Shown: piece after piece, positions 1 to 25,309 of the stretch
Layout of the letters: every line of letters begins with the position of its first letter
How positions within the stretch are numbered: the first letter of the stretch is position 1
DNA from: Lepidodermella squamata
Lineage: Eukaryota; Animalia; Gastrotricha
Length of the DNA stretch: 64,000 bases
Direction: 5' to 3'
Assembly (NCBI GenBank): GCA_047495785.1
Contig: JBLDXI010000003.1
Location: forward strand, 1,674,001 to 1,738,000
Notes under the pieces: model-generated
Databases searched by the model: none
The model's input: only the letters and a program-made list of their open reading frames with translations
Told to the model about the DNA's origin: nothing
Made by a program: the position numbers and the translations under genes

Positions 1-885
1 TAATTTTGTTTGAAAAATCGAGGAATATATGAAAAATCGAAAAATTGTTGAAAAGATGAACAAGATAGAATTCCATCTTGATACTATTTGTCCAATTTCA
101 GTTGAAGAATTGAACTGTGCAGGTAATAATTGCGTAGTTAAAGCTTCGCTACTTGCAATACTTCGCTCCGAGATGTTCAAAGGTAGTTGAATTTGAATAT
201 AATGCCAGTTTTTAATATTTTAGCTGCTTATATTTATCTATTATCGATTTTGTTTACTTTCGATGAGATTTTCAGTAGTATCATTAGAACCCATTTCGTT
301 ATATTGTCTTTATGAGACAGAAGTTTCTGAGCTATTCATTATTTTAGATTTTCTGGAATATTTCATAATTAATTTTTTGAATAATCAATTTCGTCTAAAT
401 AACCGCCAATATAGAGGTTCCAGCACTGAAGTCAAGGGGATTTGACTTTTTCCTATTATGTGGGATTTTTTATTTTTTTAGCGATACTGAGGCCCCTAAG
501 GCTACGGATTTTTATTTGATTTTCCTTCTTCCGGGTACTTCAATAAGTGAGACAATGTTGATTGCTGGCTGCCCAGACTTCCGATATTGAAAAAATCACT
601 GATTTGTAAAATCGATACTTGAAATCGATATCGGCTGAGGAGAAATCGATAATGAGCGAAATATCAGTTGTTATCAGTTGGGCATGAAAATAATTTGAAT
701 AGAGCCTAGCCATATTTTGCAAAAATCTCTTGCTGGTTTTAGCTTGGCCCATCCTAATTTTCAATTTCTAGATATATTCGAAATTTCATTTTCAATTATC
801 TTTTAGTGGATCCGTGATTGTTCTGATTGGCTCTATCTTGCGAATGGGCTCTTATCATTTGTTTGTTTTTTGTCCGTTTTCTCAG

Positions 886-3800
886 GTCAAAAGCCGAATA
901 TCACCGAGGGTCTGGGTAAAACCGGGGTCAAGGACCAAATGGAGGACGCTGATTGGCTGCAACTCGCCATCAACCTGCAAAACCGTCTCGGCCGGCGCGA
1001 AGCCGAGCGCCGCGCCGCCGACGGCAAGCAACCGGCCTTCAACGTGTGCATCAACGACGGCGGCTACGAGGTCGGCCGCAATTACGTGCTGATGGCCCGC
1101 GTCGAGGGCCGCCCCGCCCCGGTGGTCACGTGGTACCGTAACGACGAGGCGTTGCATGACGGCTATCGCGTCGCCACGTTTTCGTCGACAGAATCTGGCC
1201 ACGCTTGGCTGACCCTGCTCATGGCGAAGCCGCATGATGCTGCTGTGTATAAATGCGTGGCTAGGAATGCGTTTGGTATCGCCCGTTGCCGTAGTCGGGT
1301 GTCGGAGGGTGACGTGCCCGGGGCGCCGGGTCGTCCCGTTATCAGTGACATCTCGTCGACGGAGGCTTTCGTGCTCTGGGATGCGCCGAAAGAGACTGGA
1401 AATATCGGCAGCCGATACTATAAGGTAAAAAGCTTTAACAGAAATCTCTTGAAAAAACTGAATTTTTAAGGATTTATTTGTTAAGAAATTTGTTAAATTC
1501 ATTAAAATCAAATTTAATAAAAATATCAAACTTTTTTGAAATTAAATTTTGGAGTTATTAAAAATTGAAAAATTAGATTTCAATTAAATCTGAAATTTGT
1601 TGAAATATTTCGAAATTTTTTCATTGGACTCAGATTTTTCAATTTTGTTCGCAAACTAAGAAGTATAAAAGCTTCTTTCAGCTTTAGCTAATGCTTGGGA
1701 AAATGTTTGCTGAATTTCCCAAACATTTTGCTTAAAATTACATATACTTAAGTAGCGTTTGGAATTGTTGGAATTGTTAGGCCCGATTGCTTATTTATAA
1801 AAACTTTGAGGAAAAATGGAAAATTATGAGTAACGTCACTCATCTTTCGTCTTCAATTTCTCTCCACGATTCGAAATTCCCTCAAAAAAACCCGGAAAAC
1901 CCGATGGTAACTTTTTCGGTCATTTTCGGTATTTATTCACTTGAACTAACTTATCCGGATTTTTTCATATTTCTGTTGGAAATATTCATACTATTCTGTT
2001 TTCCGGACTTGGAATGCAGAGTATTTTTACACCTTTTTCAGTTTAACACCAATTTATTATCATTTTCATTTTATTTCAGGTCGATTATCGCGCTGAAACC
2101 GCTGAAAAGTGGACATGCGCCGGCTACACAATCGACGAAGCTGCGTACGTGACCGGCCTGCGCCCCAACACCATCTACCGGTTCCGCGTGTCGTGCGGCA
2201 ACCGCCTCAGCCTCGGCAACTACAGCTACGGCTCGATCGAGGTGCGAACCAAAGAAACCGGCTCGTTCTCAAGCGACAACGACGAGCGGTCAATCATCGC
2301 CTCGTCACGCCAATTCTCTTGCCCGCCCATCGCCATATCGCTGCAGAAGGGCCGCCAATTCTTCCTCGAATACTCATCAGTCACAAATGTCACGTCAACC
2401 CCAGATTTCTTCAACATTGTCGACCCAACAGTTAAACGGCCGCTGGAAATCGCCCAGGGCACGGATACTATGCAACTTGTCTCGAATGAGTTCAAAATCG
2501 GCGACAGCCTTAAGCGCCAAGTTGGCGTGTCGATGAGCCACGTGACTGAGGTGAAAACCGGGCGCAAATTCGTGCTGAAAACCGCCTCGAAAACATCAGC
2601 GGCTGGGTTGAAATTAGCCCGCCAGCTCGAGGTCCTACGCGATTTAGAGTCAAACCGCATCGAGTTAATCCGAGCGGCCTTCGAAACGCCGGAAGAGCTA
2701 TCGACAATCAGCCTGCCCGTTAACCCAGATCTGGACATTGTGCAACATTTGTGTTTTAAGAACAAATATTCAGAGAACGATGTGGCGACCGTTGTTAGGC
2801 AGCTGCTCGATGCGCTGCACTACCTGCACAAACGCCGCGTTGTTCACAGCAATTTGAACCCGCGCTGCGTGCTCGTCGACGATGTGCTGTCGCTCAAGGT
2901 TCGCCTGTGCGGCTTCGACCACGCGTGTTTGATTGACGTTGGCGCGAGCGAGGCGGTGCGGGCGCCGTTTTCCGATGACGATTCGGATGTTGATGTGCAG
3001 TTTGTTGCGCCTGAGCTGCTGGGCGCCGGCAAGGAGGCGGCTGTTTCGTACCAGACAGATGCGTGGTCGCTGGCGGCTCTCACCTTCGTGCTGTGAGTTT
3101 AATTAAATATAACCGGATTTTTTTTATCGGCTAAATTAAACTGGGGGAAATTAATTATTAAGGCGGATCGAAACGTCTAGCAATTCAGTGCAATTTCTTT
3201 GCCAAAATTAAAAAAATCAATGTCAGAAACTATTTTTTACTGGGCAGAATTACGCAACTGCAAGTTGATTTTTAGAGATATTTTGTATTTTTTTTCCTAA
3301 ATTTTATCATTCTGAACCTTTCTCCGCGATTTTATTTCGAAGGAATCCCGAAAAATAGTTCGGTAGTTTTTATTTTACCTGAATTACTTCAATTTTTTCA
3401 AAAAAATTTTAAAATATTTAATTTATCTTAATTCTAAAAATAACTGAAAAATGAATTGAAGAGATGAAATTTTTTTCGAATATTCGAATAAAAGAAATTT
3501 TGAGTCGGATTACTCAGGTGCTATTCGCGATTTCTTTTAGAAAAAAATCATTCATTTTTGATTATTTGGTGAAATTGAAGATTTCGTAAAATTACAAAAT
3601 TGATTTTGGTGGTCAATTTTCTAAAATTTGGAACGAATAATCACCAAGAAAAGAACCATTAAGCAATTCCTATGTTTTTCCTTTAATTTTTCCCATGGGC
3701 ACATTTTTGAGGTTGAGTCAGATTTGAAATATTTTTTGAACAATTTTTTGAGTTTCCAAATTGTTGGAAAAAATTATTTATTTGTTATTGGTAAAAGCTG

Positions 3801-4922: not shown

Positions 4923-7900
4923 ATGATGATTTCGCTATGTTTCGCATTACTGCTTTTGGACACGTGTTGCTTGCAGCTGGCTGGCGGTGGGAAAACGTTC
5001 TACAGGCTGCCTGGTCAGAAGCCGATAGCAGCAATTCAGGGCGATGCTTTGGCTAACTATCTATTATCCTCGTAAGCTCGAAATGATGAGCAAATTCAAA
5101 GCCATGCGCTAATGTCAAAGGGTCAAAGGGTTCGATTATTGGGGCGGTTTCGCGACGGAAATAAAATGTAAAATTGTTTCTAGCGAAAGGATATAGGGTT
5201 GTCGTGCGATGTTTACAACTTAAGATTAGCGATTGAAAATAGCCGAAAAGCTCGAAATTTGGGGTTGGGTAGCCTCATTTCGGGGGTGGCTAGATAAACC
5301 CTTATATCTGATAGAAAAAGTTTGAATTTTATTTTGGCCGTAAAACTGCCTCAAAAGTGTCGTACAATTGCGTAACGCGGTGACATTTTAAGGCGTGCTA
5401 CCAGTGACGTTAACAATTAACCGGATGCTATCGCTTACAAACCATTTTCTGCTACGGCTCAATTTGTACTTGCATAAGGTTCAGGTTTGGGTATTTTAGG
5501 TCATGGGGACTTTAGGGGAATGGTTAGCTGTTAGCGTTAGGACTACGGTTAGTCTTAGATCTTATTTCAGGGCTGGTTCTAGGGTTGCCATTTGTGAAAC
5601 TTGATCTTTTGGGTTGAAGTTTAAGGCACGGTTAGCCAGAGGCGTAACCAGCCTCTCACGGTTGGAGGGCCTGGGTCATATTTTCAGGGTGCGCTTAAGG
5701 ATCCAAGAGCTATCAGCTATCAGCTATCAGTATCAGGCTATATTTACGGTTCGGTTGAAGTTGAAGTTGAAAGATTATAAGCGAATGCAGCAGCTGGGTT
5801 CGGCATAACATAAGAATAGATTGGAGTTGTTGCTCATTAAAACGGAAGAAATGGCGTAAATCTCTATGAGAAAAATACTATATAAACTTCCAAAATCACT
5901 CCGTGTAACTTTAGGTCTTTGCTGAACACTGAAAATCACTGTGCATCGGCCTGCGTTACTACTCAGGGCTGCAATGCTGCGTATTACAGAAAATCGGACA
6001 GCACGTGTTATCTGTACTCGGTATCGGTGTCAATGAATCAACTGACCACAGGAGCTGCAGCATCTCAGGACATCACGTTCGACCTTGCTTCAAATGTGAA
6101 ATCAGGCGGTAGTAATGGCGGCCGAGAGAAAGCAATGGCACAGGCTAAAAGAGCGACCAAAGCCTTACTGGACGCTATCAATAAACGTAATTTAAGTCAT
6201 GCTAGGTATTACCAAGCTATACACGCTATTTAAGCCTGCCAAAATGCGCAACCACTCGGGATGCGAGCGCATCCTGGTACTGGCGATCTATGGGACATTT
6301 ATTCGCTCGCCATCCGAAATGACCAACTGATCAGCGGCGCTAATCCCCAGACGGCTCCTCATATTAAAACAAGCTTTGGGCGACTTAACCTGAACTCAGA
6401 ATACTGGAGTGGAACACTTGTCTACTACGCTGGGCAAAGCACGAACTACCCTCTATCTTACTATCAAGTAAAACTATTCATTTATCGATGATCAAAACAG
6501 TCATTGTTTTAACCGCACAATAAGGTTTCGTTCGACACTTTTGTGTGGCTGCACCGTATAGACTTGAAGCCAATGGGATGGACGTTCACATCTTCGCTTG
6601 CGTACAGCCTAGACGGAAACACATGGCTGGATTACTTGTCACCCGCTGGGAGTGTTCAAATTTTAAATCATACTTTGGTGTATAACAGCCAGGCAACCGT
6701 GAGCCTTACACTTTGGAAACCGCTGCTAACTCATCATATCCGCATTCAACCACGTACGTGGATTAGCACTAATTATGGCTTGCAAATCGAGTTTATTGGT
6801 TGCCAAGCATCATGTCGTGGTAAGCTTCATACTGTATAGGGTTTTCATTGTGCCTGGTTCATCGGTTTACTATTTAAAATCGGAAGGATTTTTGTATATT
6901 TCAAGTCTTTAAATTTTTGACAGATTCAAATTTCGATTAAGGGGGGAAGGGTTGCGAGTTGCGAATGTTCAGCAAAACAAGTAGTATTCCAATCTTTGAG
7001 ACTGCATTTTTCCACAGAGCCCCTCGGAATTGAAGCTATGGAGTTAGATTCTTCCCAATTCTCTCAGTCCTCTTCAAGCAATTGTAACCGCACCGCTAAG
7101 TACGCGAACCTTAACAATCCTTGGCACGGTTGGATTGGGGGAAGCCTCGACTTGGCAGAATGGATTCAAGCCGATTTTCAGAAAAATCACATTGTGAGAT
7201 ATATTCTCATTTTGACCTCTAATCTAAGCCTTATTTTAGATCACTGGAGTTTCTACAATGCTCGCCAGGCCAAACCCAGCCGGCCTTCTAGGGGCCACTC
7301 AATTCACCTTGGCCTATTGCAGTGATCCGGATTGTGACGGTGCAAATTTTCAGGACGTCCGAAGCCTCGGATCATCCTCAGCACAGGTTGGAAAGTGCAT
7401 AAATTCTTAGCAATTCCACCCATTGAATTCTAGGTGTTTTCGAGCGCTAATTCTGGAGATGGCTATACGACCAGCTTTTTCGACTATCCAATCATCGCGC
7501 GGATGATACGCTTGATTATCTGGCAGTATTCTACTATGCCGGGAATTAGGTGGGAGATTCTTGGCTGCCGAGGTTCATTTCTTCGAACAATTGAACTGTC
7601 CTCTAAGGTCTCCCATTTTAGAAGTTCCAAATATTATCTTCAAAGCTCCTGATTTGGCTCTTTCGAAGCCCGCGATTTCGTCAACAGGTACTGGATTCAG
7701 CAGAATATCCGCGGTGGAATCGGGCAAGTTAACGGACCAACCTCATCGTGACAATCAAGGTCGGCTGCGCTCTTGCATCCGCGTTGATCCTGTTCCAAAT
7801 AACCAATCGTATGTTTCTATCGACCTTGGGAACATCCAAGCGATGACAGATTTGGCGATAACGCCGCCAAGACTTTACTCCGCCCTTGAGCCTGTCGGTT

Positions 7901-10900
7901 TGTGGCTTTTGGACGCGATGACAATGGTGAACGATCTAAGCGGGCAGGGTGCCGATGGCTTAGTTTCGCCGTGGGTGGAGCTGGTTGCCGGGCCATTTGG
8001 TAAACCGAAAACTGCCTTCAGATTCCCGTCTACAGTCGAAACAGCGGCTGTTCTCATACCGAAATCAGCACCGACTGCTATATCCCATTTCCCGAGTACT
8101 GATTACTCGATTTTCATGTGGGCGTATGTCGCAAATGGTTCGTGGAATGGTGGTTATGCTCACTTGCTTCAGTTCAATGTTGACGACGCTGTGGGGTAAA
8201 AAATTACGGAAGCAGAAGGCGTTAGTAACTTATTGGTTTAATATTAGGTTGTATGTCATTTCCGTGATGCCTCTAGCCAACACATCTCAATACTACGTGA
8301 AGTTGCTCAAGTCAGTAGCTCAAGGTCAATCAAGCGCTCCTTTAGAGGTAAACCGGTGGTACTTTATCGGGGTCGTGTTTGATCGAATTCGAGGTAAAAC
8401 CTGTAATAAAGATCTCTCAAAATTAACTTGATTTTATCAGCGAATTACTTCATTTTGGTCAATAACGTCATTGTTGGCGTGTGGGACCTTCCAGCAAGCT
8501 TCAGCAGTACGATCTGGTCGGATTCATCGATTACTCTCGGGTTTTACACAGCTGGCACTATCCGAAACCAGGAAACACGTATCTCCTGCGTCCAAATTTA
8601 CAATCGATATCTCACACGCAAAGAAATGGATGACGCTATGCTATGCCCATGGCAAAGTAGGAACAGAATAATGTTGCCATTTTTCTTGAATGTATTTTCC
8701 CCACAGCGCCAACTCCTTTGGTATTTTGGCCTTTGGATGGTAAATATGGCCTTAACGACTACATGGGATCATCTGCGATGGGTGCGTCAAAAGGTAGTGG
8801 TGCTTCGATTGGCACATTTCTCACTGGAGCCGCGAATGCTAAATACTCACTCGGAGCTATGACTTTCAATGGGGCCAGCAACGCATTCATGTTCCATGCT
8901 AATTCAAACGGAGAACTTACTTCGCCATACGCTATCACGATTAGCTTTTATGTGATGTGCCAATCTCAAGCAACAACTCAATCAGTTCTCGGGTACCTCC
9001 ACCCTACGGCGTCACCGCCAACCTACTCTCTGGGGGTGACTTGTAAAGATGGTCTATTCAACTTTACGGTGACTTGTCGAAATATGGCTTACACCGGCAT
9101 TTTCTCGGCTAATATGACGTCTAGAATCATGACAATGCAGAGGCTGAGGCATATGGCTATTACATACCACTACGCAACTGGGCAGTTTGCTGTTTACCAC
9201 GAAGCTAATCTTGCAATGTTGAGACAGCTCCCTCAGGGCTGTGAACTTGAGACTTCAGGGCAGTTCAGAGTCGGAGCTTTGCCATCTCCGGCAACATTGA
9301 CTTTAAACGATCGAGTCGCTTGCGTTCAGATATACAACCAAGCCCTGTCAAGCAGAGAAATACAGCAGGTTTCCCGGTGCCCCATCTACGGTGTTAGACC
9401 TGTGATGACGTGGACGACTGATTTCATCTTTCGCTGGGCACAATTATTCACGGACGAGCCTCTTGCATCCGCTGCAGATCAGGTTGCCTATACATCCAAC
9501 TTTTGGTTTGGCTTGTCGCCTTCGCCTCCTCAGCATGCACACAACTTTTCTGCTATATCGTACGTGAACTCTAAAGCAACGATAACTCAGACAATTCAAA
9601 TGCTGAGGACGGGTGCGTTCACAGTTATGCAATGGATGATGCTCAATGCCGCCCCAGCATCCACAGCCGCCGTATTCGCGACTAAAACAACCGCTGGAGT
9701 GGCTCACATCAAACTTACTATATCTCCAGCCCGAATTTTGTAAGTTCTCTCTGTTGGCTTTCAGCTAACTTTGATGGGAGTCTTGGATTTAGAGTAGGGC
9801 AATTGCAGTGTCCTGGTGGTAGTACCTACCAGGTACAATGGACTACTGCGATTGTTACAGGGTCCTGGAATCATTTCGCAATGGCTTATGACAACGTAAC
9901 TGCGACCCTTCAACTTTTCGTTAATGGCCAAACCGTGAATGCAACAACCGGAGCGAGTTGTGCTGATCTATCCTCAACAATCGGCTACCGATTAGGGGGC
10001 GATGATTACGCTGGAGGCACGGCGCCATCTGCCCTATTCAGCTGTATCTACGTCTACAACTCTTCTTTGACCAGCCATGCTATTCAGCATGTAATGAGTG
10101 GCTGCCCGAGTAAAATCGAAAGTATAGCCTTCTTAATTGTTATTTATGTGATCTCGAATCCTTGATTCCTCTTAGTTTCCCCGAGCTCATGCGAGTATCA
10201 CCTTATGCACATGGATGATTGGACACTAGTGGCGATGGACAGTCCAACAAGTTGCGGGCAAATGTCAACGGTAGACAGCCCATCTTGTGAGAAATGCAAT
10301 TCTATATTATATGCTGATAACAAAGTCGTTTTATTCAGGTTTTTGGCGCTCTCTCACCTCATCAGGAGGTTTTATTAGTATTGCTTTCAACCATGACTTT
10401 GAAATAAGAGCCGTCTTGACCTCCGGCAGCCCAGTAGCCGATGAATGGGTTACGTCATACAAGCTTAAATTTTTCTCTAGTCCTAATCTTGCGTCAACTA
10501 TGACTGATAACACCTACCGCGTGAAGGATGTCAATGGAAACGAAATGGTGATTTTTAGCCTAGATTCCGCCCACTCTAGCCTAATTCTCATAATCGTAGG
10601 TTTTCATCGGAAATTATGACAGAGATTCTGTTATTGAGAACCGACTGCCGTATGCGGCCAGAGGTCGCTACGCAGTTATCGACGTAATTACAAGCAACAA
10701 TTGGCCCGCTATGCGAATAGGATTCAAAGGTTGCAAAGGTTAGTCCGAAAAAATCACGCAACACTTTGACCGCATCATTTTTTCATAGCTCGTACTTGCA
10801 ATCGGCGTTTGATTCCCTCTAAAGTTGGCTTCGATGTGATATCAGTCAGCAATTATGACGTCGATTGCGACTCATTCGCATCAAGCTTGATCGAAGCTGG

Positions 10901-12742
10901 TGGCATTTGGTCTTATTCAATTACAAGCCCTTATGAGTCTATAAATGAAATTTTCTGGCAAGTTTCGTTCGGCTATCTGGTCAAAGTTACAAGACTACAA
11001 ATGCGGGGCAGCAATAACGTTTGCTCAAAACCTGGGTGGATATCACGATTTCGCCTTGGCTACAGCTTTGACAACAATCAATGGCTCATGCATAAAGGCG
11101 AGGACGGGTTTGTGCAAGATTTCGCGGCCAACACGGATAGCACAACCATTGTTGAGGTGCCACTTCAAATAAACCCGTTGATAGGCCGCTTCATGCGAAT
11201 TTATCCTACCGCCTATGCTAACGGTAACATCGCAATGGCGACTCGAATCTTTGGCTGTACTATTGAAGATATGGACTCAGCTTTTCCTGCTATTGATATA
11301 ACTCTCGGCAACAATTCCGTGAATAGTATAGCTACAGCCTTGTCGAATCCCAAAATCGCTGGGACTATAACTCAAGGCGAAATCATGGATCGGAAACCTA
11401 TAAGGTTGACAGTTAACCCTTACGCAAAGCCTGGTCGCTACCTCTCAATTTTATCGGCATTTAAAAACGTTGGCTTTGACATTTGCCAGGTCGAAGCTTT
11501 TAGCAGCCCTTGTAAGTCATTTGACCTTTGATGAGCCCCTACCAATATCAATCTAATCAATGTTGTAGCTTCGAATCTCGCTCTCAACCGGAAGGTCATC
11601 CTATCACCTTATTCGCATGCATCCGCTGAAATGTCGAAGCACAGGGCAACAGATGGGGTCACCGCTGCTCTCGAAACCGCGTCTACTGGTTTGTTTGGTG
11701 TCCTTATATCCTTATATTCCTGATTAAACCTTTCAGGTCAAGTTTGTACAATCGGCTCCGCAGGTGTTCCCCCTCTAGAGTTGCCTACTAGCGATTTTCA
11801 CGACGTTACACCTGCTGGGGCTGTTAGAACTACACCGCCGTCATCTTGCACAGGATCAGTTATTCAATGGGAAATTATAATGAGAACAGTGGCCGCTTCA
11901 AGACGTCGTTCAATGGGCAACATAACGACTGTTCCCGGCAATTGCTACCTGCAAAACTATCAAAACTTGAGCGCAACGTCAGCACGACTCAAATCTAGCC
12001 TTAACTTACCTATCTACCCATTCAGTGACAATCTAAGACGCAGATATTTGTAAGTCATTTGTTAGCAATGACTTGAAAGGTCAAGCTTGTCGTTTTCCTA
12101 GTGAATTCACATCGGGCACGGCAATGAATGTGGCCACCGGTGATATTCCCGGTTTCTATCCAGGCGCTGCAAATATCTTGTATTGCGGTATTAGCTACAT
12201 AGGAGGCGCAAATGGCTGGAATCCTTTGGTCTCAACCTCTGGTCCCTTGCCGTGGGAACTTCCTATGTCGATTGAAACCTCGATAGGAACAGTCGTCGAT
12301 CTTAGTTCCAACGCATCCGTTGCATCGAGGTATCGCTATCAACTTGCAAGAGGATACGTCATTGGTAAAGAAATAGATTAAAGCTCCGTAGAATCAACTG
12401 GTTAATGGCTTTGATTTTTCAGATCCCACCGCAGAATTGTGGATAGCAGTAGATTTGTATTTCGCGAGTGTTGTCTCTCGTGTTCTGGTCTACATCGCAG
12501 CGGATCGTTACGGTTATAGTCTGAGGAACACTGAACTGAGGGTCGGAATGTCTCTTTCAAGTATCGAATCCTCCAGCCAACTGTGCGATGTTGTGTTGCC
12601 TCTGAAGGAACTCGACTATCGATACGCTAGCCGACCCCATGAACTATTCTGTCTACAGCCTGCATATGGCCGTTACGTGATCTTAAGGCGCAGAACGCCT
12701 GGACTACTCCCTATCGCGGAAATACTAGTATACTCATTGTGA
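4923..12742 (+). CDS. Large secreted multidomain lectin-like protein: signal peptide, PAN/apple, several F5/8 type C (discoidin), several LamG/pentraxin-like and two F-type-lectin-like domains
   Basis: Signal peptide MMISLCFALLLLDTCC; PAN motif CASACVTTQGCNAAYYRKSDSTCYLY; discoidin motifs (YSLDGNTW...IRIQPRTW...GLQIEFIGC; EWIQADF; EWVTSYKL; RFMRIYP...RIFGC); LamG-like motifs (FWPLDG, WNHFAMAYD, VQIYNQALS); F-type lectin-like motifs (LALSKPA, WIAVDL, GRYVIL). About 20 exons, first 4923-5071, last ending at TGA 12742. Confidence 0.8.
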
Positions 12743-14782: not shown

Positions 14783-14933
14783 TTATGCGTGGCTCACAGT
14801 GCGTATTTTGATTGTTACAGCTCCCTCGGGGAACTACAAAAAGTTAGAAATCATGCAACAACATGAGTGCTGTGCTTGATCAGTGAAAGTTAAACGATAT
14901 TTAAAAGAGGGCATAAAATCATCTTTCATCCTA

Positions 14934-17900
14934 ATGGCTAGCCGGCGGCCTTCGGTTAGCAGCGAGCAACAACCAGGTAGCTCTCGCCGATCATCAGGAA
15001 CAGATCCAAATTCAGGTTCGAGAAGACCATCAGCCTCCGATGACTCGCCAGTGCGCGGCCCTGGAAAATTGCAAAGGCGAACTTCTAGTACTGAGGGCCG
15101 TGAAGGTAGGCGAGCATCCGTTCTCGATTCGCTACCCGCTAGTATGGCCGAAAGAACCCGACGAAGGCAGAGCATTTTCCAAAGAGCACCAATTGTCCTT
15201 ACAGAGGAGGAAATGGCAGAAATGGCTGAGAAAATCGAGGAGGAAAGGCGTGGCTTAAATGTTACAATGCCAAGTACAGCTGAGGAAACGACTGGTAAGG
15301 AAGATGAGGACGCTTTCGAGTCGGAACCTGCTCCAAAAGCGCGACAAAGGCGGCCCACTTTCATGGGTCAATTACCTAGCGACGCTTCGATGGGGGTTCT
15401 ACAGCGGAGGACCGGTCTCTTACCAGCAGCAACTTTGATGGATGCAGCAGCTGTGATGAAAACGAAAAGGCGGGGTTCAAGACGGGCGTCTGGAAAATCA
15501 GTGGGGAGGACTAGTCGGTTATCTTCGGTTTCATCGTCTGGTAGCAACGCAACTGCTCAGGAAACTGGGTCAATCGCCGGAAGCACTACCTCGACTGATC
15601 GCCAGTCGATACCCGGCGCTGCGGCAGCTGCAGCTGGTTTGATGAGGAGACGTCCTGCTCCCGCCTCAGCGGCAATGGCTGCGTCTATGCTACATACAAG
15701 AGCTGCACCTCAGTCCGCGGCTATGGCTGCTTCGATGCTTCATACGAGAAGGGCGCCTGAGTCAGCTGCAATGGCCGCCTCGTTTTTACATCCTCGCACG
15801 TCCTCCACTCCAGAATCCGCCTCACTGGCAGCTTCGCTGTTCACGAGGAAAACATCAAACCAAGGCCCAGTTGTACCATCGATGGCATATCTATTCATGG
15901 CAAGGCAAACTCTTCTTTCCCTAGCAAAGAATAGTGAATGGGCTCAGGTCGAAATGGCACTGAAGAACATGGCCAAGAATGACGACAGGCTGAACCAGGC
16001 TGATCCTGAAACTGGGGAGACCCCGCTAATGCTGGCATGCCGAGATAACAAGTTGGTAGTAATCGAGCGGCTCTTAGAACTCGGGGCTCAAGTTAACTTA
16101 AAAGCACAGGTAACAATTATACTTTTATCGAATACCAGAAGAAAACTTGAATCAAATACAGGATCGACGAACTGCCCTGCATTACGCTGCTCAGTATTGC
16201 CATGACGACGTTGTGAAGGTTTTGCTGGCTAAAAAGGCTGATCCAAATGTTTTTGGAGGGGTTAGGAGCGCCATTTTGCCGAAGTTCTTAAATTAAATAG
16301 TATTTTCATAGTTTCTAAACCAACTACCGCTTCACATGGTACTATCGAGACGTCACGGGGTTCATGTTACTGGGTTGACTTTACTTCGTGCCACAGCCAG
16401 AGATGCCCGGCTCCAAAAAGATGGTTTCGGTTATCTTCCAATCAGCTATGCTGTTCAATCCGGGTATTTCGGGATATTTCGAGAATGTCTAGTCTTTTTC
16501 CAGCAAGAACAGTTGAAATGGCGCCACGATACTACAGGCGACTATCTGGTCCATATCGCAGCCCAGCAGCGCAATCTAACAATCATGAACTACCTAGCCT
16601 CAGAATGCAACGCTGACTTGAATGTACAGAACAATGATGGTCAAACCCCTTTGCACATTCTAACAACACTTGGGGACGAAATGATGGTGCGAATGATGCA
16701 GTCCTTCAAGGCGGATGCAAATTTAATGGATGTGAACGAACAAACACCGGTATGCAAATTACTTTAGCTTGGACTTAGTAACTAATCTTCCAAATCTATA
16801 GATTCATATTGCAGCCGAACTTGGCCATACAACTATAGTTGAACTGCTGGTCGAGCGTTTCAGAGCGAAAGTGCATCTTAGGACAAAAGACGGATCAACA
16901 CTGATGCACCGAGCTGCTGAGAAAGGTTATGTTGACACAGTTGAAGCCTTCATTCGCCGGGGGGTTGCGCTCCATATGCCGAACAAGCAAGCTTTTCTGG
17001 CTCTGCATATCGCGGCTGAAAAGGGCCATAACGATGTGGTCAAATTGCTAGTCAAAAAAGGATCCCCTGTCGATGCTAGGTCACGTGAGGGCTACACAGC
17101 TCTTCATTTGGCTGTCATTCACTGCCATCCAGATGTCATTCAAGTAAGGATGAAACCAAAATTACTGAAAATTACAAGCATTGTTTGAAATTTTCCAGGT
17201 TCTCTTGGGATTCGGAGCTAAGGTAGATCTGCTAGGAGGAGCTGCTCAGGAGGCTCCATTGCACATCGCAGCCCGATTACCGGACGGTTTCGGATGTGCC
17301 GAGATGCTGCTAAAAAGTGGAGCGAATTGCAACAAAGTGAATGGCGAAAACGGCGAGACGCCTCTCCACATCGCAGCTCGCCATGGCCATCTCGATGTCA
17401 CAAACATGATATTGAGCGAAAACGGTGATCCTAAGTTGAAGTCGAAATTCGGCGAGACAGTTCTCCACGTTGCGGTCCGGTCTTGCCATTTAGATGTGGC
17501 GATTTCATTGCTCGATTTCATGAAGCGGACCTATTCCCAGGAAGCAGCAACTGCGTATATTAATGCACTTAATAACGAGGGTGAAACAGCCTTTCACCTC
17601 GGCGCCGTCCTAGAAGGTTATCAGGCTCATTACCCAGGCGAAGAGGTCGATATAATAAAACTCCTACTGGGTAAAACTCTAGGAAAAGTCTAGCTGTATC
17701 GTAATATTTCCCTATTTTTCAGAAAATGGCGCCGATCCTTTGTTGACGACTCGTCAAACTGTTGAAAATTCGTTGCACTATTGCGCAACATCTGGCAATC
17801 CAGCTATTTTTTCCGTCATCGTCGACCAGCTGGGTAATAACTTTCATACGATTTGCAACCGGCAAAACAAGATCGGCAGATCAGCGTTGATGGTCGCTTG

Positions 17901-20900
17901 TGAACAGGGCCACGCTGAGATCGTTGAAATCCTCCTCAAAAACAACGCAAGAGTTGATGTGTTTGATGAGGTTAGTTATATATAATGAATGATGAATGAT
18001 GATTTCAGTTGTGCCTAATTTTAGCAAGGCAAAGCTGCCCTTCACCTTGCCGCTGAAAATGGCCATACTGAGTGTTGCGAGGTTCTGTTAAAGCATCGAG
18101 CCTTTGTAAACGTGAAATCCAGGCTCGGCTTCACTCCTCTCCACTTCGCCGCCCAGAATGGCTATACCAACCTTGTCAAACTCTTGATCGAAAAGTATCA
18201 TGCTACAGTCGGGGCCTTATCACTTGATAAGAAGACCCCTCTCCATTTAGCCTCAGGTATACTCTAGAAATCTGGCAAATGCCCGTCCCGATGCCTAATT
18301 TTTCAATTCTAGAGTATGGCCGTAAGGAAGTTTGCCAGTTGTTGATGAATTTGCGTGGTAATCCAACTGCTACCGATGAGTTGGGCCACAAGCCTGTTCA
18401 TCTAGCTGCCCAAAATGACCACAGCAGTGTGATGAAGTTGTATATTAAAAGCACACCGGATTTAGTGACATCGGTCAACAAGGTATGAGACAGTTCGAAT
18501 TTTCAGCTGTTGATTAATGCGAAGCCAACATTATGTAGAACGGCATGACATGTGCTCACATTGCGGCTAATAAGGGATCACTGAGCGTGATTAAGGAGCT
18601 GATGAAGTTCAACAAAAACTTGGTTGTAGCTGCAAGGGTAAGTGGTGCCGCGAACAACACCCTGAACGATTCGCTGCCAATTCATTTGGCTGTGAGCGGG
18701 GGATACTCTGATGTCGTACGCGAGCTAATCGACGCTGGAACCTCGGCAACCGCGGAAAATTATGAAGGAATGAATGCTATTCATCTGGTTAGCTCTTGCT
18801 TCATTATGTTTATTGACTATGAATTTTAGTTTGGAAATTTAGGCAGCAAAGGAAGGTAACGTGGAGGTGCTCCAAGGAATCCCTTCGAAGCTAAGCCTGA
18901 AGATTCTCAGTCAAAAAGTAAGTTAAGATTAGAAATTTTGGAGTTAGAGCCCTGCCTTATATTACGCAGAATGGACTTTCACCAATCCATGTTGCTGCTT
19001 TCTATGGCAACGCTGAATTCGTTCGGGAAATCCTTCAATATGTTGACGCAAATATCAAGTCCCAAGCTCCTCTGAGTGCCAACACTGTATCAGACCCCAT
19101 TCTACGAAATTTGATTAACAGTGATGTAATATTTGACTGCTTTAATTCAATGTTTCCACCTATTTGATTTTCAGAATGGCTTGACCTGTTTACACCTTGC
19201 ATCGTTCAGTGGCCATGCCAATGTTGTAAGACAGCTGTTGAACGTAGCCGGTGTGGAATTCGATCTTCCAACGGCTCAATTAGGCCGTTATCCAGTGCAT
19301 TGGGCCTGTTACAATGGTATTTCAATTTGTTAATGTTTTACTTGAGTTTCACTTGGCAATGCTCCTTAGGTCATTTGCCTGTTGTCAGCATCCTCATGTC
19401 TCGGTCCTCTGGGCTGCTCAGCGTCTCGGATAACCGCGGTCGCATGCCCGTAAATTCAGTCTTTCAACGTTTTTCTAACCTTATTTTGTTACAATGAATT
19501 TACAGTTGCATCTTGCGGCTGACAACGGTCATATCGAAATGGTTGCAACATTGCTTGGACAAGGTGCTGAAATCAATGCCCGTGACCAAGATCGATGGAC
19601 AGCGCTTCACTACGCAACTCGGGGTGGCTACCTACCTTTAGTGCGGCTTCTGATCGAAGCAGGTGCAACGCCAACTTTGAAGACTAAGGAAGACCAAACC
19701 GCCCTGATGCTAGCCACTAGTGGTGGCCACATCGATGTCTACAGATATCTGGTTGAGAAGGACCATGACACTGAAGAGTTGATGGAGGAGAGCCCTTTCC
19801 TTATGAACCTAATGCTGTGTTCGAAAAGCAACAATAACAAATCGATAGACGAATTCGTCGACAATTCAAAGGCGCCGCTTTACACAGCAGCTCGCCTGGC
19901 TCGTTTGTATCGTGATTTGGCCTTCAAAGAGAAGGAGCGGGCGAAAGATCTGAATGATTGCGGGCGCTATCTCGAACACACTGCGACTGAATTGCTAGGC
20001 ATCGCAGCAACTGCTGCCCCGCCCTCTGCCATTCTACGCTCAGTTGACAGTAAGGCTGTCCAGTTCTTGGACATGCTTTTGGAAGATAATTTGAAAGATG
20101 TAATCGAACATGCTGTTGTACAGCGGTACCTAAGTGACGTTTGGGCTGGTTCACTCAGCAAATGGACTGGCAGAAAATTGATTTTGCTATTCCTTGGCTT
20201 CTACTTCTTCCCACCACTTTGGGCGTACTATTCGATGCCGCTATCAAGATATCACTACCACTACCATATTCCAATAATCAAGTTTATGGCTCTTCTTGTT
20301 TCCCATTTTCACTTAATTACGCTGCTGACCATCATAGCAGCTCTACCTTTGCATCCAATAGTGTATAGGACGGATTTTCGGCCGTATTGGTACGAATATG
20401 TGTTACTAGCTTGGGTTTCGGGTATGCTGGTCTCGGAGTTGACGAACCAAGGCTCGCGCTCTGGTCTTAGCCTTCTGCGACCTGTCATCGTAATATTCTC
20501 AGTTGCAGCTTCAATTTGTCAAGGAGCAGCCATTATTCATGAGTAAGATAAAACCCATTATTCAATTAGTCTTTGGGTAACAGTTTTTTAGGGAGGTGTT
20601 TATGAACCATCCATACGCCGTAACCATCATGTGGGTCCGTAACTTCATGCTGTCACTCTCTCTTTTCGCGGCTATAATTCTCACGCTTGGTGAGTCAATT
20701 TCAAAACAATTGTCTCCTTTACTATATTTTGATTTCAGATTTCCTTTTGATTCATCACCTTTTCGGCGAATTTGGTATCATTATAAGCGCCGTGTTCAAA
20801 GACCTAGTCACTTTTCTGGTTGTCGTCATGATTTTCGTCTTCGCATTTTCTTTCCAGCTTTGTTGCGTTTATTCGCCTGTTCAAGGCAGCCGATATGTAG

Positions 20901-23265
20901 CTCTTGAAGAAGCGAAAATTGCTGCACGGTCGGAGGCAGCAACTACAACGGCAGCAGTAACTCCAAACCTAACGACTCCTCAGAGCTTTGAAACGAGTGG
21001 ATCTGGAGAATTCCCCACTGAAGTGTCACTGGAAATCCTTGATTTTGAAATTTCAACGACAAAACATCATTCGACCCATTCTTTTACTACGCTGCCAAAT
21101 TGGAGCCACTTGGATTACAGTTCGAATGGGACCTTTGAAGTTTCGCACAAAAATTCGACAACTCGAAGCACGGCCTTGAACACAACTACAAGCTCTATTC
21201 CGAGAAATGGCACAACCAAATCAAACCTTTCCAGAGGAGTTTTTACTACCTTTCGGCCAACCCCGAGCTTCAACTTGAGCAGTACTGTCAGCAGGAGGAA
21301 CAATACTTCGGGAACTACAGTAAAACCTCTTGGTTTGATAGCATCAACCCGGGCTGTTACTACCTTACCAACGCTATCAGCTGGAAACCGAACTACTGTA
21401 AAATACACTGCTACTGGTACTACAGTGAGACCTCTGGGATTGATGGCATCTACTCTTGTTGTCCCGAATTCAGTCGTACCAACGCAGTCGACCTCGCAAG
21501 CTAAAAGCTCGACTATTCCATTCACGACAACTGCTGCAACAGCTAATGTAACAGTGGCTAAGAGGCTTAATGGAACAACACTGGTCCCCGGGAATTTTTC
21601 TAGCCTTACAACATCGACGCCTATCAACAGAACAACAGCTTCGGTTCGATACAACGCAACTGCAGCCATGATTACTAAACTTCCTAATTCAACGAATGCA
21701 ATTAAGGTTTCTAATGGGACCACTGTGGTACCGAGTTTCAACTATTCTACCCCGAGATTGAATATGACAACCCCGAACCCTAGGTTCATCAATGCTACAA
21801 CTTCCGCAGTTAATCGGACCATGTTAAACTCTACCACGACCAAAGCGAACTATACAACTGGCAGGAGTAATACTACGACATCCCCCTTTCAAGCGAACGC
21901 TACGAAAATTAACTCTACTACGGTCAAACCGCCCAACTCAAACACTACGATGACTGCTAACTCGACTCGAACGTCAATAACTCCGCAAAGGAACAATCAA
22001 ACTTACTCTGTGAATGCTACGAATTCGCCTGCTGTAAATGCATCTAGAATTGGCAACAGACCTAAGCGTGTTAAAAGCGCGCCGCAGAAGTGCAAATTGC
22101 CCAATCGGGATGGCTCGAAGCACGGGAAGAACGCATCTACCCTTGAGGAAGAAATCGCTAAGAAACAGGTAGAAGTAAGCGAAGAAGACAGTGAAGTTAC
22201 CGTCCAAAATAACAAGTAAGTGCCAAGTTATCGTAGATTACATGGCTTGAAATTGTTCCTTTGATAGGGATCCTTTCATTCTCATTTTCATTTTCAATGC
22301 GCTGTATTTTGGTTTGTTCGGCATGATCACTCTGGATACGTTGCCCGTTGTGAAAGATGGTCCGTGGTGGGCTCATTATCTCATCGAGATGTATGGTTTA
22401 CTCGAACTAAATAAAAGCTAAATTTTAGCTTTTTATTATTCTAGCTACCTTGGTATTTACTTGATGGTTACATGTAAGATTTAGAGTTAAACATCTCTCA
22501 TTTAACGGTTTTTCTTCCTAATAGCCATTGTTCTTGTCCCGCTGTTAATTGCCATGTTGACTGAGACTTACATAAGAATTCATTTGCGATCTGAGATCGA
22601 ATGGAAATTCGGCCGAGCGAAACTCATCCGCTCTATGGTTAAAATGTAAGTGGTGCCACAAGTATAGTTTCCTCCTTAATTTTGATCATTTCAGCTCCCC
22701 TACGCCTCCACCCCTTAATTTGTTTGTGCGACCTTACGCCTACATCATGGCTCTGAAAAATCACGGCTGGGACATGTTTACCATCTACGCAAATTATTAC
22801 CTTGATATGGATGAGCGGGAAGGTGCGAACGACGCTATTGACGGCCGATCTACTACCGCAGGTTCCCGTGGCGCGAAATCTACACCAAAACGTACTGGTG
22901 CTGCAAAATCAGCCCTTCAAGGCCTTTACAGACGACTGCTACTGACTCGTCTTGCTAATTGCATACCCTTTCTGGCTAGCCGTCGTGACGCGCTTGGAAT
23001 AACCTTGGCTACCCCAGCTGCCGCTGGCCAGGCTCCTCGTGTTGTTGCTGCTGATGAAGGGCCGCAGAGAATCGAGGAAGTTTGTGATTGGAAACTTGTA
23101 GTCAAAAGATACCGCTCTGGAACCACATCTGATACACTACTACTAGAGTCGAACCGTGACGATGTACCAGATATTCCTGACTTCGTAGTTGAGAACCACG
23201 GCAAATCTGATGGAGGTGGAGGATTCTCCCACATTGGGCCGTCTATTCTAGGAGTTGCATCGTAG
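14934..23265 (+). CDS. nompC: TRPN/NompC-family mechanosensitive TRP channel (long ankyrin array, 6 TM, TRP box), divergent
   Basis: Well over 20 ankyrin repeats (GETPLMLAC, GQTPLHI, GETPLHIAARHGH, etc.); linker KEKERAKDL...VVQRYLSDVWAG; S4-S5 DFLLIHHLFGEFGIII...KDL (NompC DFLSFHHLFGPWAIII..KDL); pore LYFGLFG; S6/TRP box LLIAMLTETYIRIHLRSEIEWKFGRAKLIR and PPPLNL. Many short GT-AG introns and a 29-nt micro-exon at 22445-22473. Confidence 0.9.
15657..15848 (+). repeat. Four ~48-bp (16-aa) coding tandem repeats in the TRPN N-terminus
   Basis: APASAAMAASMLHTRA / APQSAAMAASMLHTRR / APESAAMAASFLHPRT / (S)TPESASLAASLFTR. Confidence 0.8.
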
Positions 23266-23685: not shown

Positions 23686-25309
23686 ATGCGGTCTAGAACA
23701 GTTTCAGAGAAAAATTCAGTGTCCATTAATGGGACCGAAGAATTTTTCGCGATCGACTCCTCACTGCCTAAAATTAGCACCGACAGTTTGCCAGCTCCAG
23801 CTAATGGAAGCACTACGCCACTTGTAACTCCAGCTATCAGCGAGCCGAGTGTTGCCAAAAAGTCTAATTTACGACCGCTACGAAGCCCTGGACCACAAAG
23901 AACTCGCCGTTGGACTGAAAGCAATGGTGTACAAAATAATAATTCGCTGAAACGACAGCCTTACAACAATAAACCGGATATTGCAGAAGAAGATGAGCTT
24001 TTTCTCAGAATTGATGATGATCTAAGCCTGAATGGAACCCGACGACCATTGTCTACAACGAGCTCTGCGCCGTTGGAGTCACCGAAGGAATGCATACTAC
24101 CAATCTCTGAACTGCCGCTTGAACACAAGCATAACAGACAGCGGCTAGTTTCAAAAGATGGGTCGGTGAACGTTCAAATCGGGGATTCGTCCAAGAAAAA
24201 AGAACTATCCATGTAAGATGTCCAACTCCCGTTAAATCATCTTAACGCAACCTCATGTTTCAGGGATTTCTTTGACCTGTACACGACAATGCTAGAGCTG
24301 AAGTGGAGCCATTTGTTACTAATGATTTGCGTGAGCCTGATTTTCAGCTGGGCCTTCTTTGCCTTGTGTTGGTACGTAATCATAACTTATCGAGGCGACT
24401 TAGGTTATCTAAGCCGACCTGCCGGCAATGAAACAAACCCAGAGGAGCCTTACATGCCCTGTGTGGTGGGTGTCGACTCTTACACGACAGCATTTCTTTA
24501 CACCTTGGAAGCTCAGACTACCATTGGATTCGGTAGCAGGCATCCAACTGACCGCTGCATTGAATCAATTTTCCTGCTTATTATACAAACAGTGCTCGTA
24601 AGGTTCACCGCTTACCATTTGTAGAACTTCTTTTTGTAACATTAGTCCAGGCTGTCTGCCAAATGGGAACTGTTGGAGCACTTATGGCTGGCAAATTCAT
24701 CAAACCGAATAGAAGGAAGCATGCTTTGAAACTCTCAAAGTATGCTTGCATCGATACCCCTCAGTTCCAAGTCGGCTCTGAATTGGTTATTCGAATGTAT
24801 GATTTGAGACAAAAATCGCGAATAATTGTTCAAAACGTATGGGGCGTCTTAGTACGGCGTGGTGTCAATCCGAAAACTGGTGCTCCAAGTAAGCTTTTTC
24901 TATTTAAGAATCAGTTTGGCTTTCAAATTTTCGCTTAGCGCTGAAATCTTGTGAGGTTTCATTCAAACCAAATTATGGAATGGGAGCTGGTAATATTTTG
25001 CTTACGGTTTTTCCTGTAACTTTGGTTCATGAGATCGATGCGACTAGCCCGTTCTTGGGGATGTCACCACGAGATTTGATGCTTGGAGGTTCTGCCTCGT
25101 CTTTTGAGCTTATTGTAGCGGTTGATGGTATGATGGAATGCAATGGCTTGGCTTTTCGCAAGCTCTCAAGCTATCTCCCAGACGAAATAAAGTTGGCTCA
25201 CTCCTTCGAAGAAATTCATGGTTCGTTACACGGCAACCGTTTTTCAGTAGACTTCAACAAGTTGGAATCAGTTGTTTCGCTCCCCGTGAAATTTTCCAGG
25301 CAAACGTGA
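23686..25309 (+). CDS. Inward-rectifier potassium channel (Kir family), divergent, GFG filter
   Basis: Exons ~23686-24212, 24264-24597, 24651-24888, 24939-25309. RLVSKDGSVNV, DLYTTMLELKW, M1, PCV...AFLYTLEAQTTIGFGSRHPTDRC, KPNRR, VHEIDATSP, FELIVAVDG, SSYLPDEI, VDFNK are canonical Kir motifs. Confidence 0.9.

Follow-up and report, generated by a model that had tools for sequence, protein, structure and literature searches.

The fruit-fly channel NompC is the textbook case of a pore gated through an intracellular ankyrin tether, with an outer face that is almost bare. A gene of the same TRPN family, found in a 64,000-nucleotide stretch of the gastrotrich Lepidodermella squamata (contig JBLDXI010000003.1; the whole stretch is hereafter the window, and all coordinates refer to it), departs from this picture: between membrane segment S5 and the pore helix its frame runs on through 446 residues rich in Thr, Ser and Asn. 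The question raised by this locus is whether such a tract is a translated part of the channel and, if so, what it may do on the outer side of the pore. What is observed is a translated-looking and selectively maintained open exon with a strong excess of N-glycosylation sequons (N-x-S/T) and no membrane segment; the account favoured here, with moderate confidence, is that the tract is a translated, extracellular, disordered and N-glycosylated expansion of a clade-specific turret (the loop between S5 and the pore helix), acting as a passive glycan canopy. The features of the tract are the following.

20879..22215, plus strand: the 446-residue Thr/Ser/Asn-rich turret tract from S5 to the pore helix, with 33 sequons and no segment resembling a transmembrane helix, predicted to be disordered.
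21300..21462, plus strand: an old internal duplication (GTTVKPLGLIAST and GTTVRPLGLMAST), 58 nt present twice, 105 nt apart.
22058..22069, plus strand: RPKR, a furin-type R-X-K/R-R motif, tract residues 394-397, 8 residues upstream of the Cys.
22091..22093, plus strand: the sole Cys of the turret (QKCKLP), tract residue 405.
22135..22215, plus strand: the acidic end of the turret (LEEEIAKKQVEVSEEDSEVTVQNNK), adjoining the pore helix.

The open reading frame (ORF) holding the tract extends from 20687 to 22219 on the plus strand and the exon that contains it from 20739 to 22215, the same limits between which a preliminary description of this DNA had placed an insertion of about 440 residues. In the S5 frame (codons from 20741) the reading is FLLIHHLFGEFG...FAFSFQLCCVYSP, then 446 residues ending ...VTVQNNK; given in full, it is FLLIHHLFGEFGIIISAVFKDLVTFLVVVMIFVFAFSFQLCCVYSP, the 446 residues, and the end ...EEDSEVTVQNNK. 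This frame is continuous with S5 upstream and holds no stop in its 446 codons, against 9-54 stops in the other five frames and a mean expectation of 21.4, never fewer than 8, in 3000 dinucleotide-preserving shuffles. At the downstream end a near-consensus donor (CAA/GTAAGT, at 22216) and the acceptor at 22267 delimit a 52-bp intron whose removal joins the tract in phase to K-DPFILIFIFNALYFGLFGM, and thus to the pore helix (LYFGLFG), as the preliminary description had it. All 19 introns of the gene belong to a very narrow size class of 49-56 bp (16110-22694), and an intron of 1.3 kb removing the tract would exceed each of them about 25-fold in length.

Splice sites were scored with position weight matrices derived from 15 of the gene's own introns. 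No frame-compatible donor with a score of 5 or more was found near S5 for the acceptor at 22267, and the single short intron-like element in the tract exon (21548-21603) has a combined splice score of 11.2, against at least 13.4 for real introns, and is not a multiple of three in length. Three other candidate donors were rejected on phase: TAT/GTAGCT at 20897, just after S5, is in phase 0 while the acceptor at 22267 is in phase 2, and those at 22169 and 22175 are likewise phase-incompatible with this acceptor. On the minus strand, 21115-21741 holds a Val-rich antisense ORF of 208 residues within the tract; it was rejected as a gene and is most probably a mirror image of the ACN/AAY-rich codons of the sense frame; no splice sites are linked to it, and the other minus frames carry 9-54 stops. 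One sequencing run mapped onto the window covers introns like exons, and is for this reason taken to be genomic DNA; it also shows heterozygous bubbles. In its contigs the depth over the tract equals that of the flanks, and the contigs tile the tract and both of its junctions, so that an assembly artefact is unlikely, but the run may be the assembly's own source.

The composition of the tract (T 87, S 56, N 43, P 28, Arg+Lys 46, Asp+Glu 20, Cys 1) is by itself insufficient to account for its sequons, of which there are 33 against 12.8 +/- 2.9 in 2000 composition-preserving shuffles (maximum 23), a little more than the thirty or so that had been noticed at the outset. They comprise 25 NxT and 8 NxS, while the T:S ratio of the tract is 87:56, and their density is 7.4 per 100 residues, against 0-0.57 in the cytoplasmic parts of the protein. 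The 353-residue N-terminal tail, with 22% Ser/Thr, serves as an internal control and carries sequons at chance level only (2). N-glycan sequons are thus the dominant signal in the tract, and their excess fits an extracellular, N-glycosylated loop. The term mucin-like, used in the preliminary description, holds for composition (32% S+T, 6.3% P) and not for architecture, as no proline-threonine-serine tandem repeats were found and Tandem Repeats Finder detected no tandem array in the tract; the GTTV(K/R)PLGL(I/M)AST repeat pointed out in that description is real, and is encoded by the one diverged 58-nt duplication, whose copies (21300-21357 and 21405-21462) are 74% identical. The middle of the tract is net basic and its last 25 residues are acidic. 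No Pfam family was found in it.

The topology points in the same direction. The maximal 19-residue hydropathy of the tract is only 1.13, against 1.6-2.7 in the membrane segments of the channel, and the topology is therefore taken to be unchanged, with no extra membrane helix. The linker between S5 and the pore helix would be extracellular by homology, and the tract, located between the two, would consequently lie outside the cell. In a single-sequence AlphaFold2 model only the S4-S5/S5 helix is confident (predicted local distance difference test, pLDDT, 74-91), and from residue 64 to residue 489 the pLDDT stays below 50, with no secondary structure modelled.

The gene around the tract was modelled from collinear tblastn matches with relatives and from an enumeration of splice sites, by hand and with a small dynamic-programming check. 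Its parts are listed here.

14883..23265, plus strand: TRPN (NompC-type) channel gene model, 20 exons and 19 introns, with a provisional 5' end.
15990..19780, plus strand: ankyrin-repeat array, model residues about 375-1399, from Pfam Ank matches and an iterated profile.
19506..20542, plus strand: exon with the last ankyrin repeats, the linker helices and S1-S4, by alignment to NompC.
20592..20689, plus strand: small exon encoding a hydrophobic segment that immediately precedes the S4-S5 linker and S5 (EEVFMNHPYAVTIMWVRNFMLSLSLFAAIILTL; RNFMLSFVLLSSILLI in relatives), from frame and splice sites.
20739..20878, plus strand: first part of exon 16, with the S4-S5 linker and S5 (DFLLIHHLFGEFG...FSFQLCCVYSP).
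22268..22390, plus strand: pore-helix and filter exon (DPFILIFIFNALYFGLFGMITLD...WWAHYLIEI), from the splice model and tblastn to relatives.
22445..22473, plus strand: 29-nt microexon, start of S6 (YLGIYLMVT), with flanking introns of 54 and 51 bp.
22525..22645, plus strand: exon with S6 and the TRP box (IVLVPLLIAMLTETYIRIHLRSEIEWKFGRAKLIRSMVK), from tblastn and the splice model.
22695..23265, plus strand: C-terminal cytoplasmic tail and stop codon, from the splice model.

The spliced model has 2461 stop-free codons counted from the start of the open frame (the first ATG is codon 18) and the architecture of a six-transmembrane channel, with HHLFG, S5, LYFGLFG, S6 LLIAML and IEWKFGRAKLIR in order; the reading from S6 to the TRP box is IVLVPLLIAMLTETYIRIHLRSEIEWKFGRAKLIR. 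Its best match among solved structures is Drosophila NompC (TRPN1; PDB 5vkq) at E 2.5e-133, with exon 19506-20542 alone aligning to residues 1047-1378 of 5vkq at 320 bits (last ankyrin repeats, linker, S1-S4). The match of TRPA1 to the protein is confined to the ankyrin repeats, and one of the relatives (P0007) matches NompC at E 2.2e-52, against 6.4e-17 for TRPC5. An iterated profile detects 26 ankyrin repeats (model residues 378-1399), and two gaps in the array (439-517 and 810-910) could hold about three degenerate ones, which would bring the total to about 29, the exact number not being fixed by this count; the array of NompC has 29 repeats. Because of the match to NompC, the long ankyrin array, and the S6 and TRP box, the gene is identified by homology as a TRPN, in agreement with the preliminary description, and a mechanically gated cation conductance would be predicted for the channel from its family. 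Around the tract, the S4-S5/S5 segment is 73% identical to that of a probable orthologue (P0011, see below), and the equivalent segment of a relative aligns to NompC 1422-1465. The microexon is supported by relatives, which have YFGVWMVIAA at the position of YLGIYLMVTS and code these residues unsplit.

Two further peculiarities of the protein lie outside the turret. S6 reads IVLVPLLIAML (22525-22560), where canonical TRPNs have VLINLLIAMM and NompC has LIQLLIAMM; the conserved Asn/Gln is replaced by Pro in this gene and in all its metagenomic relatives (LIPLLIAML), and this Pro may impose a permanent kink on the gate helix. The N-terminal extension that precedes the first ankyrin repeat (14934-15990; 353 residues) is rich in Ser, Arg and Ala, is probably disordered, and carries a threefold (S/Q/E)SAAMAAS(M/F)LH(T/P)R repeat and many RRxS-type motifs.

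How far the turret sets this channel apart was examined among relatives. A word search whose query covered the linker and S1-S4 as encoded by exon 19506-20542 (query residues 95-350) retrieved exon-sized ORFs of 56-69% identity on metagenome contigs, which carry compact tandem TRPN genes. The lengths found are given below, spacing being measured from the HHLFG motif to the pore motif, including S5 and part of the pore helix, and turret lengths being approximate.

NompC: spacing 77, turret of about 27 residues (1466-1492 of 5vkq).
Canonical TRPNs (P0007-P0010, n=4): spacing 65-75, turret of 15-25 residues, with no sequon and no Cys.
Metagenomic paralogues (L003 g1-g3 and L006): spacing 131-178, turret of 77-125 residues.
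Probable orthologue (L008+L009): spacing 221, turret of 168 residues.
Window gene: spacing 499, turret of 446 residues.

The short turret of 15-27 residues seen in NompC and the four canonical TRPNs (typical of the family, not defining it) is thus absent from the window gene, whose tract is about 16 times longer than the loop of fruit-fly NompC; that this loop has only a few tens of residues is stated correctly in the preliminary description. The solved TRPN, TRPC, TRPV and TRPM structures that were matched have short linkers too. The preliminary description had, on the other hand, treated the insertion as unique, and here the comparison leads elsewhere, as the tract is the extreme of a graded series. 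Five genes of paralogue type (L003 g1-g3, L006 and P0014) have turrets of 77-125 residues with 2-4 sequons and one Cys each. The probable orthologue, found by an exhaustive HMMER search (P0011, E 1.4e-18) on a contig (L009) that overlaps another (L008) bearing an S1-S4 exon of 69% identity, has a turret of 168 residues with 7 sequons and one Cys, open in the same exon. It has the GEFG motif of S4-S5 in common with the window gene, and 55 residues align at 73% identity, from the S4-S5 linker through S5 into the start of the turret. Its acidic tail ends in RNNK, the phase-2 donor there is the same as in the window gene, and DPMLLVDIFVTLYFALFGM comes next. Each of the seven long turrets examined has exactly one Cys, a Pro 2-3 residues later and basic residues on either side, and in six of the seven the sequon excess over shuffles is significant at P<0.05. 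The orthologue on L008+L009 belongs to the same organism as contig L003; L003 itself (1-21251; metagenome sample ERZ27333047) holds at least three complete TRPN genes head to tail in about 20 kb, and the three have single-Cys turrets of 77-116 residues.

Only the edges of the tract have recognizable counterparts. The exhaustive HMMER search with the S5+tract exon returned S5 matches and the orthologue P0011 only, with no match beyond tract residue ~48 (query positions after 94) in 1.84 billion protein representatives; a word search with the same exon gave nothing significant among the 8000 candidates scored (270-861 residues), and a scan of metagenome DNA loci with the tract exon gave 240 pattern matches, none of which was confirmed. 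A word search with the C-terminal exon also found no match. The N-terminal ~10-45 residues of the tract and its acidic C-terminal tail resemble the orthologue, and about 280 residues in the middle are new. From the graded lengths of the relatives and this unmatched middle, the window gene is best read as the extreme of a clade-wide turret expansion, in which some 280 residues would have been added since the split from the orthologue's lineage. In the literature searched, no paper linking TRPN/NompC with rotifers was found, and the titles on TRP pore turrets in it deal mainly with TRPV1 and TRPML1, not with TRPN.

Heterozygous variation gives an independent view of constraint; the counts are those of the variants listed, placed on the gene model, and 8 further variants lie outside this set. 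In the S1-S4 exon (19506-20542) 14 of 14 single-nucleotide polymorphisms (SNPs) are synonymous, as are 4 of 4 in the S6/TRP-box exon and 9 of 9 in the C-terminal exon (13/13 for these two), and the flanking exons together reach 27/27, which indicates that the gene is under strong purifying selection. The introns hold 7 variants. In the tract there are 3 synonymous changes and 3 conservative replacements (R>K, T>S, T>S), and no indel or stop variant was seen. The T>S at 21305, which falls in the two overlapping sequons of NNTS, keeps both, and the other two replacements are outside sequons. The tract is therefore under looser, yet not absent, constraint.

In the favoured account, the tract would be a translated part of the channel, a disordered S5-pore loop that arose by lineage-specific, low-complexity expansion of a turret already long in the clade, the older turret having had about 80-170 residues, a single conserved Cys surrounded by basic motifs, and additional sequons. 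It would be densely N-glycosylated, with up to 33 glycans per subunit and 132 per tetramer if all sequons are used, adding roughly 60 kDa per subunit at about 2 kDa per glycan. Both ends of the tract are fixed to the same subunit, and for this reason it is pictured as a loop forming a canopy over the outer vestibule. A passive canopy over the outer pore mouth, proposed here rather than a folded domain or a specific tether, could provide a steric, hydrating or protease-resistant shield, possibly touching the extracellular coat.

Several points weigh against this account. The only frame-compatible donor, a weak one at 21823 (score 5.6), could in principle define a 445-bp intron whose removal would cost the tract its last 131 residues and leave 315, and retention of the whole exon in the mRNA is a prediction from the genomic sequence. 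The single-sequence AlphaFold2 model is weak evidence for disorder. The sequon excess speaks for selection for glycosylation, not for any particular function; past its first residues the tract is unconserved with the orthologue; and low-complexity expansions can be nearly neutral.

The last of these points leads to the best of the competing explanations, a possible though not a probable one, namely that a nearly neutral, runaway expansion of low complexity took place in a permissive loop and that the product is glycosylated only to pass quality control in the endoplasmic reticulum, with no function in the channel. It would be in keeping with the unconserved middle of the tract and the failure to find a homologue among the 1.84 billion representatives, with the predicted disorder, and with the fact that half of the tract SNPs change a residue, against none of the 27 in the flanks. 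It sits badly with the fact that at least seven genes of the clade have kept turrets that are long, rich in sequons and provided with a single Cys, with the strength of the sequon excess and its NxT bias, and with the sole replacement within sequons being one that preserves both of them.

An unlikely explanation, though one with a definite molecular handle, starts from the furin-type site. A convertase of the secretory pathway could cut between RPKR and the following V, and so mature or regulate the channel as furin does ENaC; the products would be a free-ended, glycosylated stalk of 397 residues on S5 and, attached to the pore helix, a 49-residue stub that bears the Cys and the acidic tail. 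The motif noted in the preliminary description is indeed present near the end of the tract, in what is predicted to be a disordered luminal loop, 8 residues before the conserved Cys, and RxKR motifs occur in three of six related turrets (RTKR, RRKR, RRKR), with basic clusters flanking the Cys in all. Against this reading, a single RPKR is within chance (about 0.13 expected, by composition arithmetic), the probable orthologue has none, and the position of the motif relative to the Cys differs between paralogues.

Much less probable is the extracellular tether envisaged in a dual-tether model, where the four glycosylated loops of a tetramer would bind the extracellular coat or a ciliary sheath and act together with the ankyrin spring. 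In its favour are no more than the size of the tract, the place where it lies, and the single conserved Cys, which might form a disulfide with a partner or a neighbouring subunit; there is no folded binding domain, the expanded part has no conserved sequence, and the tract, anchored at both ends in one subunit, could be a stalk only after cleavage and is otherwise a loop. The broader proposal that the giant turret is a working extracellular element, either a furin-freed stalk coupled to the coat or a cap over the pore held by Cys disulfides between neighbouring subunits, which would add gating or regulation from outside to that by the ankyrin spring, is an equally long shot. Finally, that the tract or most of it is missing from the mature protein, as a long intron or exitron or because the gene is decaying, is scarcely credible, since beside the weak donor at 21823 it has to face an open frame where 21 stops are expected, a sequon excess that would be meaningless in an intron, 19 of 19 introns of 49-56 bp and no frame-compatible donor near S5, an orthologue retaining an open turret of 168 residues in the same exon and splice phase, and flanking exons under strong purifying selection.

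The neighbourhood of the gene comprises an inward-rectifier K+ channel gene (Pfam IRK, IRK_C) at 23686-25309, on the same strand and about 420 bp past the TRPN stop; upstream, at 5919-12742, a large gene, split into multiple exons, that encodes Laminin_G_3 and F5/8 type C (discoidin) domains; and further upstream, at 870-3096, a gene with immunoglobulin I-set and protein kinase domains.

With turrets of 80-450 residues, the clade suggests that the S5-pore linker of a TRP channel tolerates, and perhaps exploits, a very large extracellular addition. The turret in the window is the longest among those compared, and the natural series of 15, about 100, about 170 and 446 residues could be used to probe the effects of a canopy on conductance, on the access of toxins and ions, on trafficking and on mechanical gating. 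If the expansion is only tolerated, it would still illustrate how selection can preserve N-glycan sequons in a disordered loop that evolves fast; if it is a working outer element, the gating or regulation of a NompC-type channel would come from outside in addition to its ankyrin spring.

Among known systems NompC is the closest, and has the same order of parts (a long ankyrin array, linker helices, S1-S6 and the TRP box EWKFG), but its S5-pore-helix loop is about 27 residues against 446 here (spacing 77 against 499), its S6 reads LIQLLIAMM against LVPLLIAML, and it is without the 353-residue N-terminal tail; it is not known to have a glycan canopy. The long-turret TRPNs of the clade share family, insertion site, the Cys followed by Pro, extra sequons and basic motifs, and differ in extent (77-168 residues and 2-7 sequons, against 446 and 33). 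In K2P channels the pore is covered by a cap formed from the M1-P1 linker, and the lone Cys of each subunit makes an interchain disulfide. This too is an extracellular structure built from the linker between an outer helix and the pore helix, with one Cys per subunit, but it is a folded helical hairpin of about 60 residues, whereas the tract described here would be long, unfolded and glycosylated, and its disulfide is conjectural. TRPML and TRPP channels likewise carry a large glycosylated extracellular crown on a TRP tetramer; their luminal domain, however, lies between S1 and S2, is folded, has about 200 residues and is conserved in sequence. ENaC, lastly, offers a precedent for furin cuts in an extracellular loop that regulate a channel, but it belongs to another superfamily, and its paired, conserved sites release an inhibitory peptide, in contrast to the one unconserved RPKR found in this turret.

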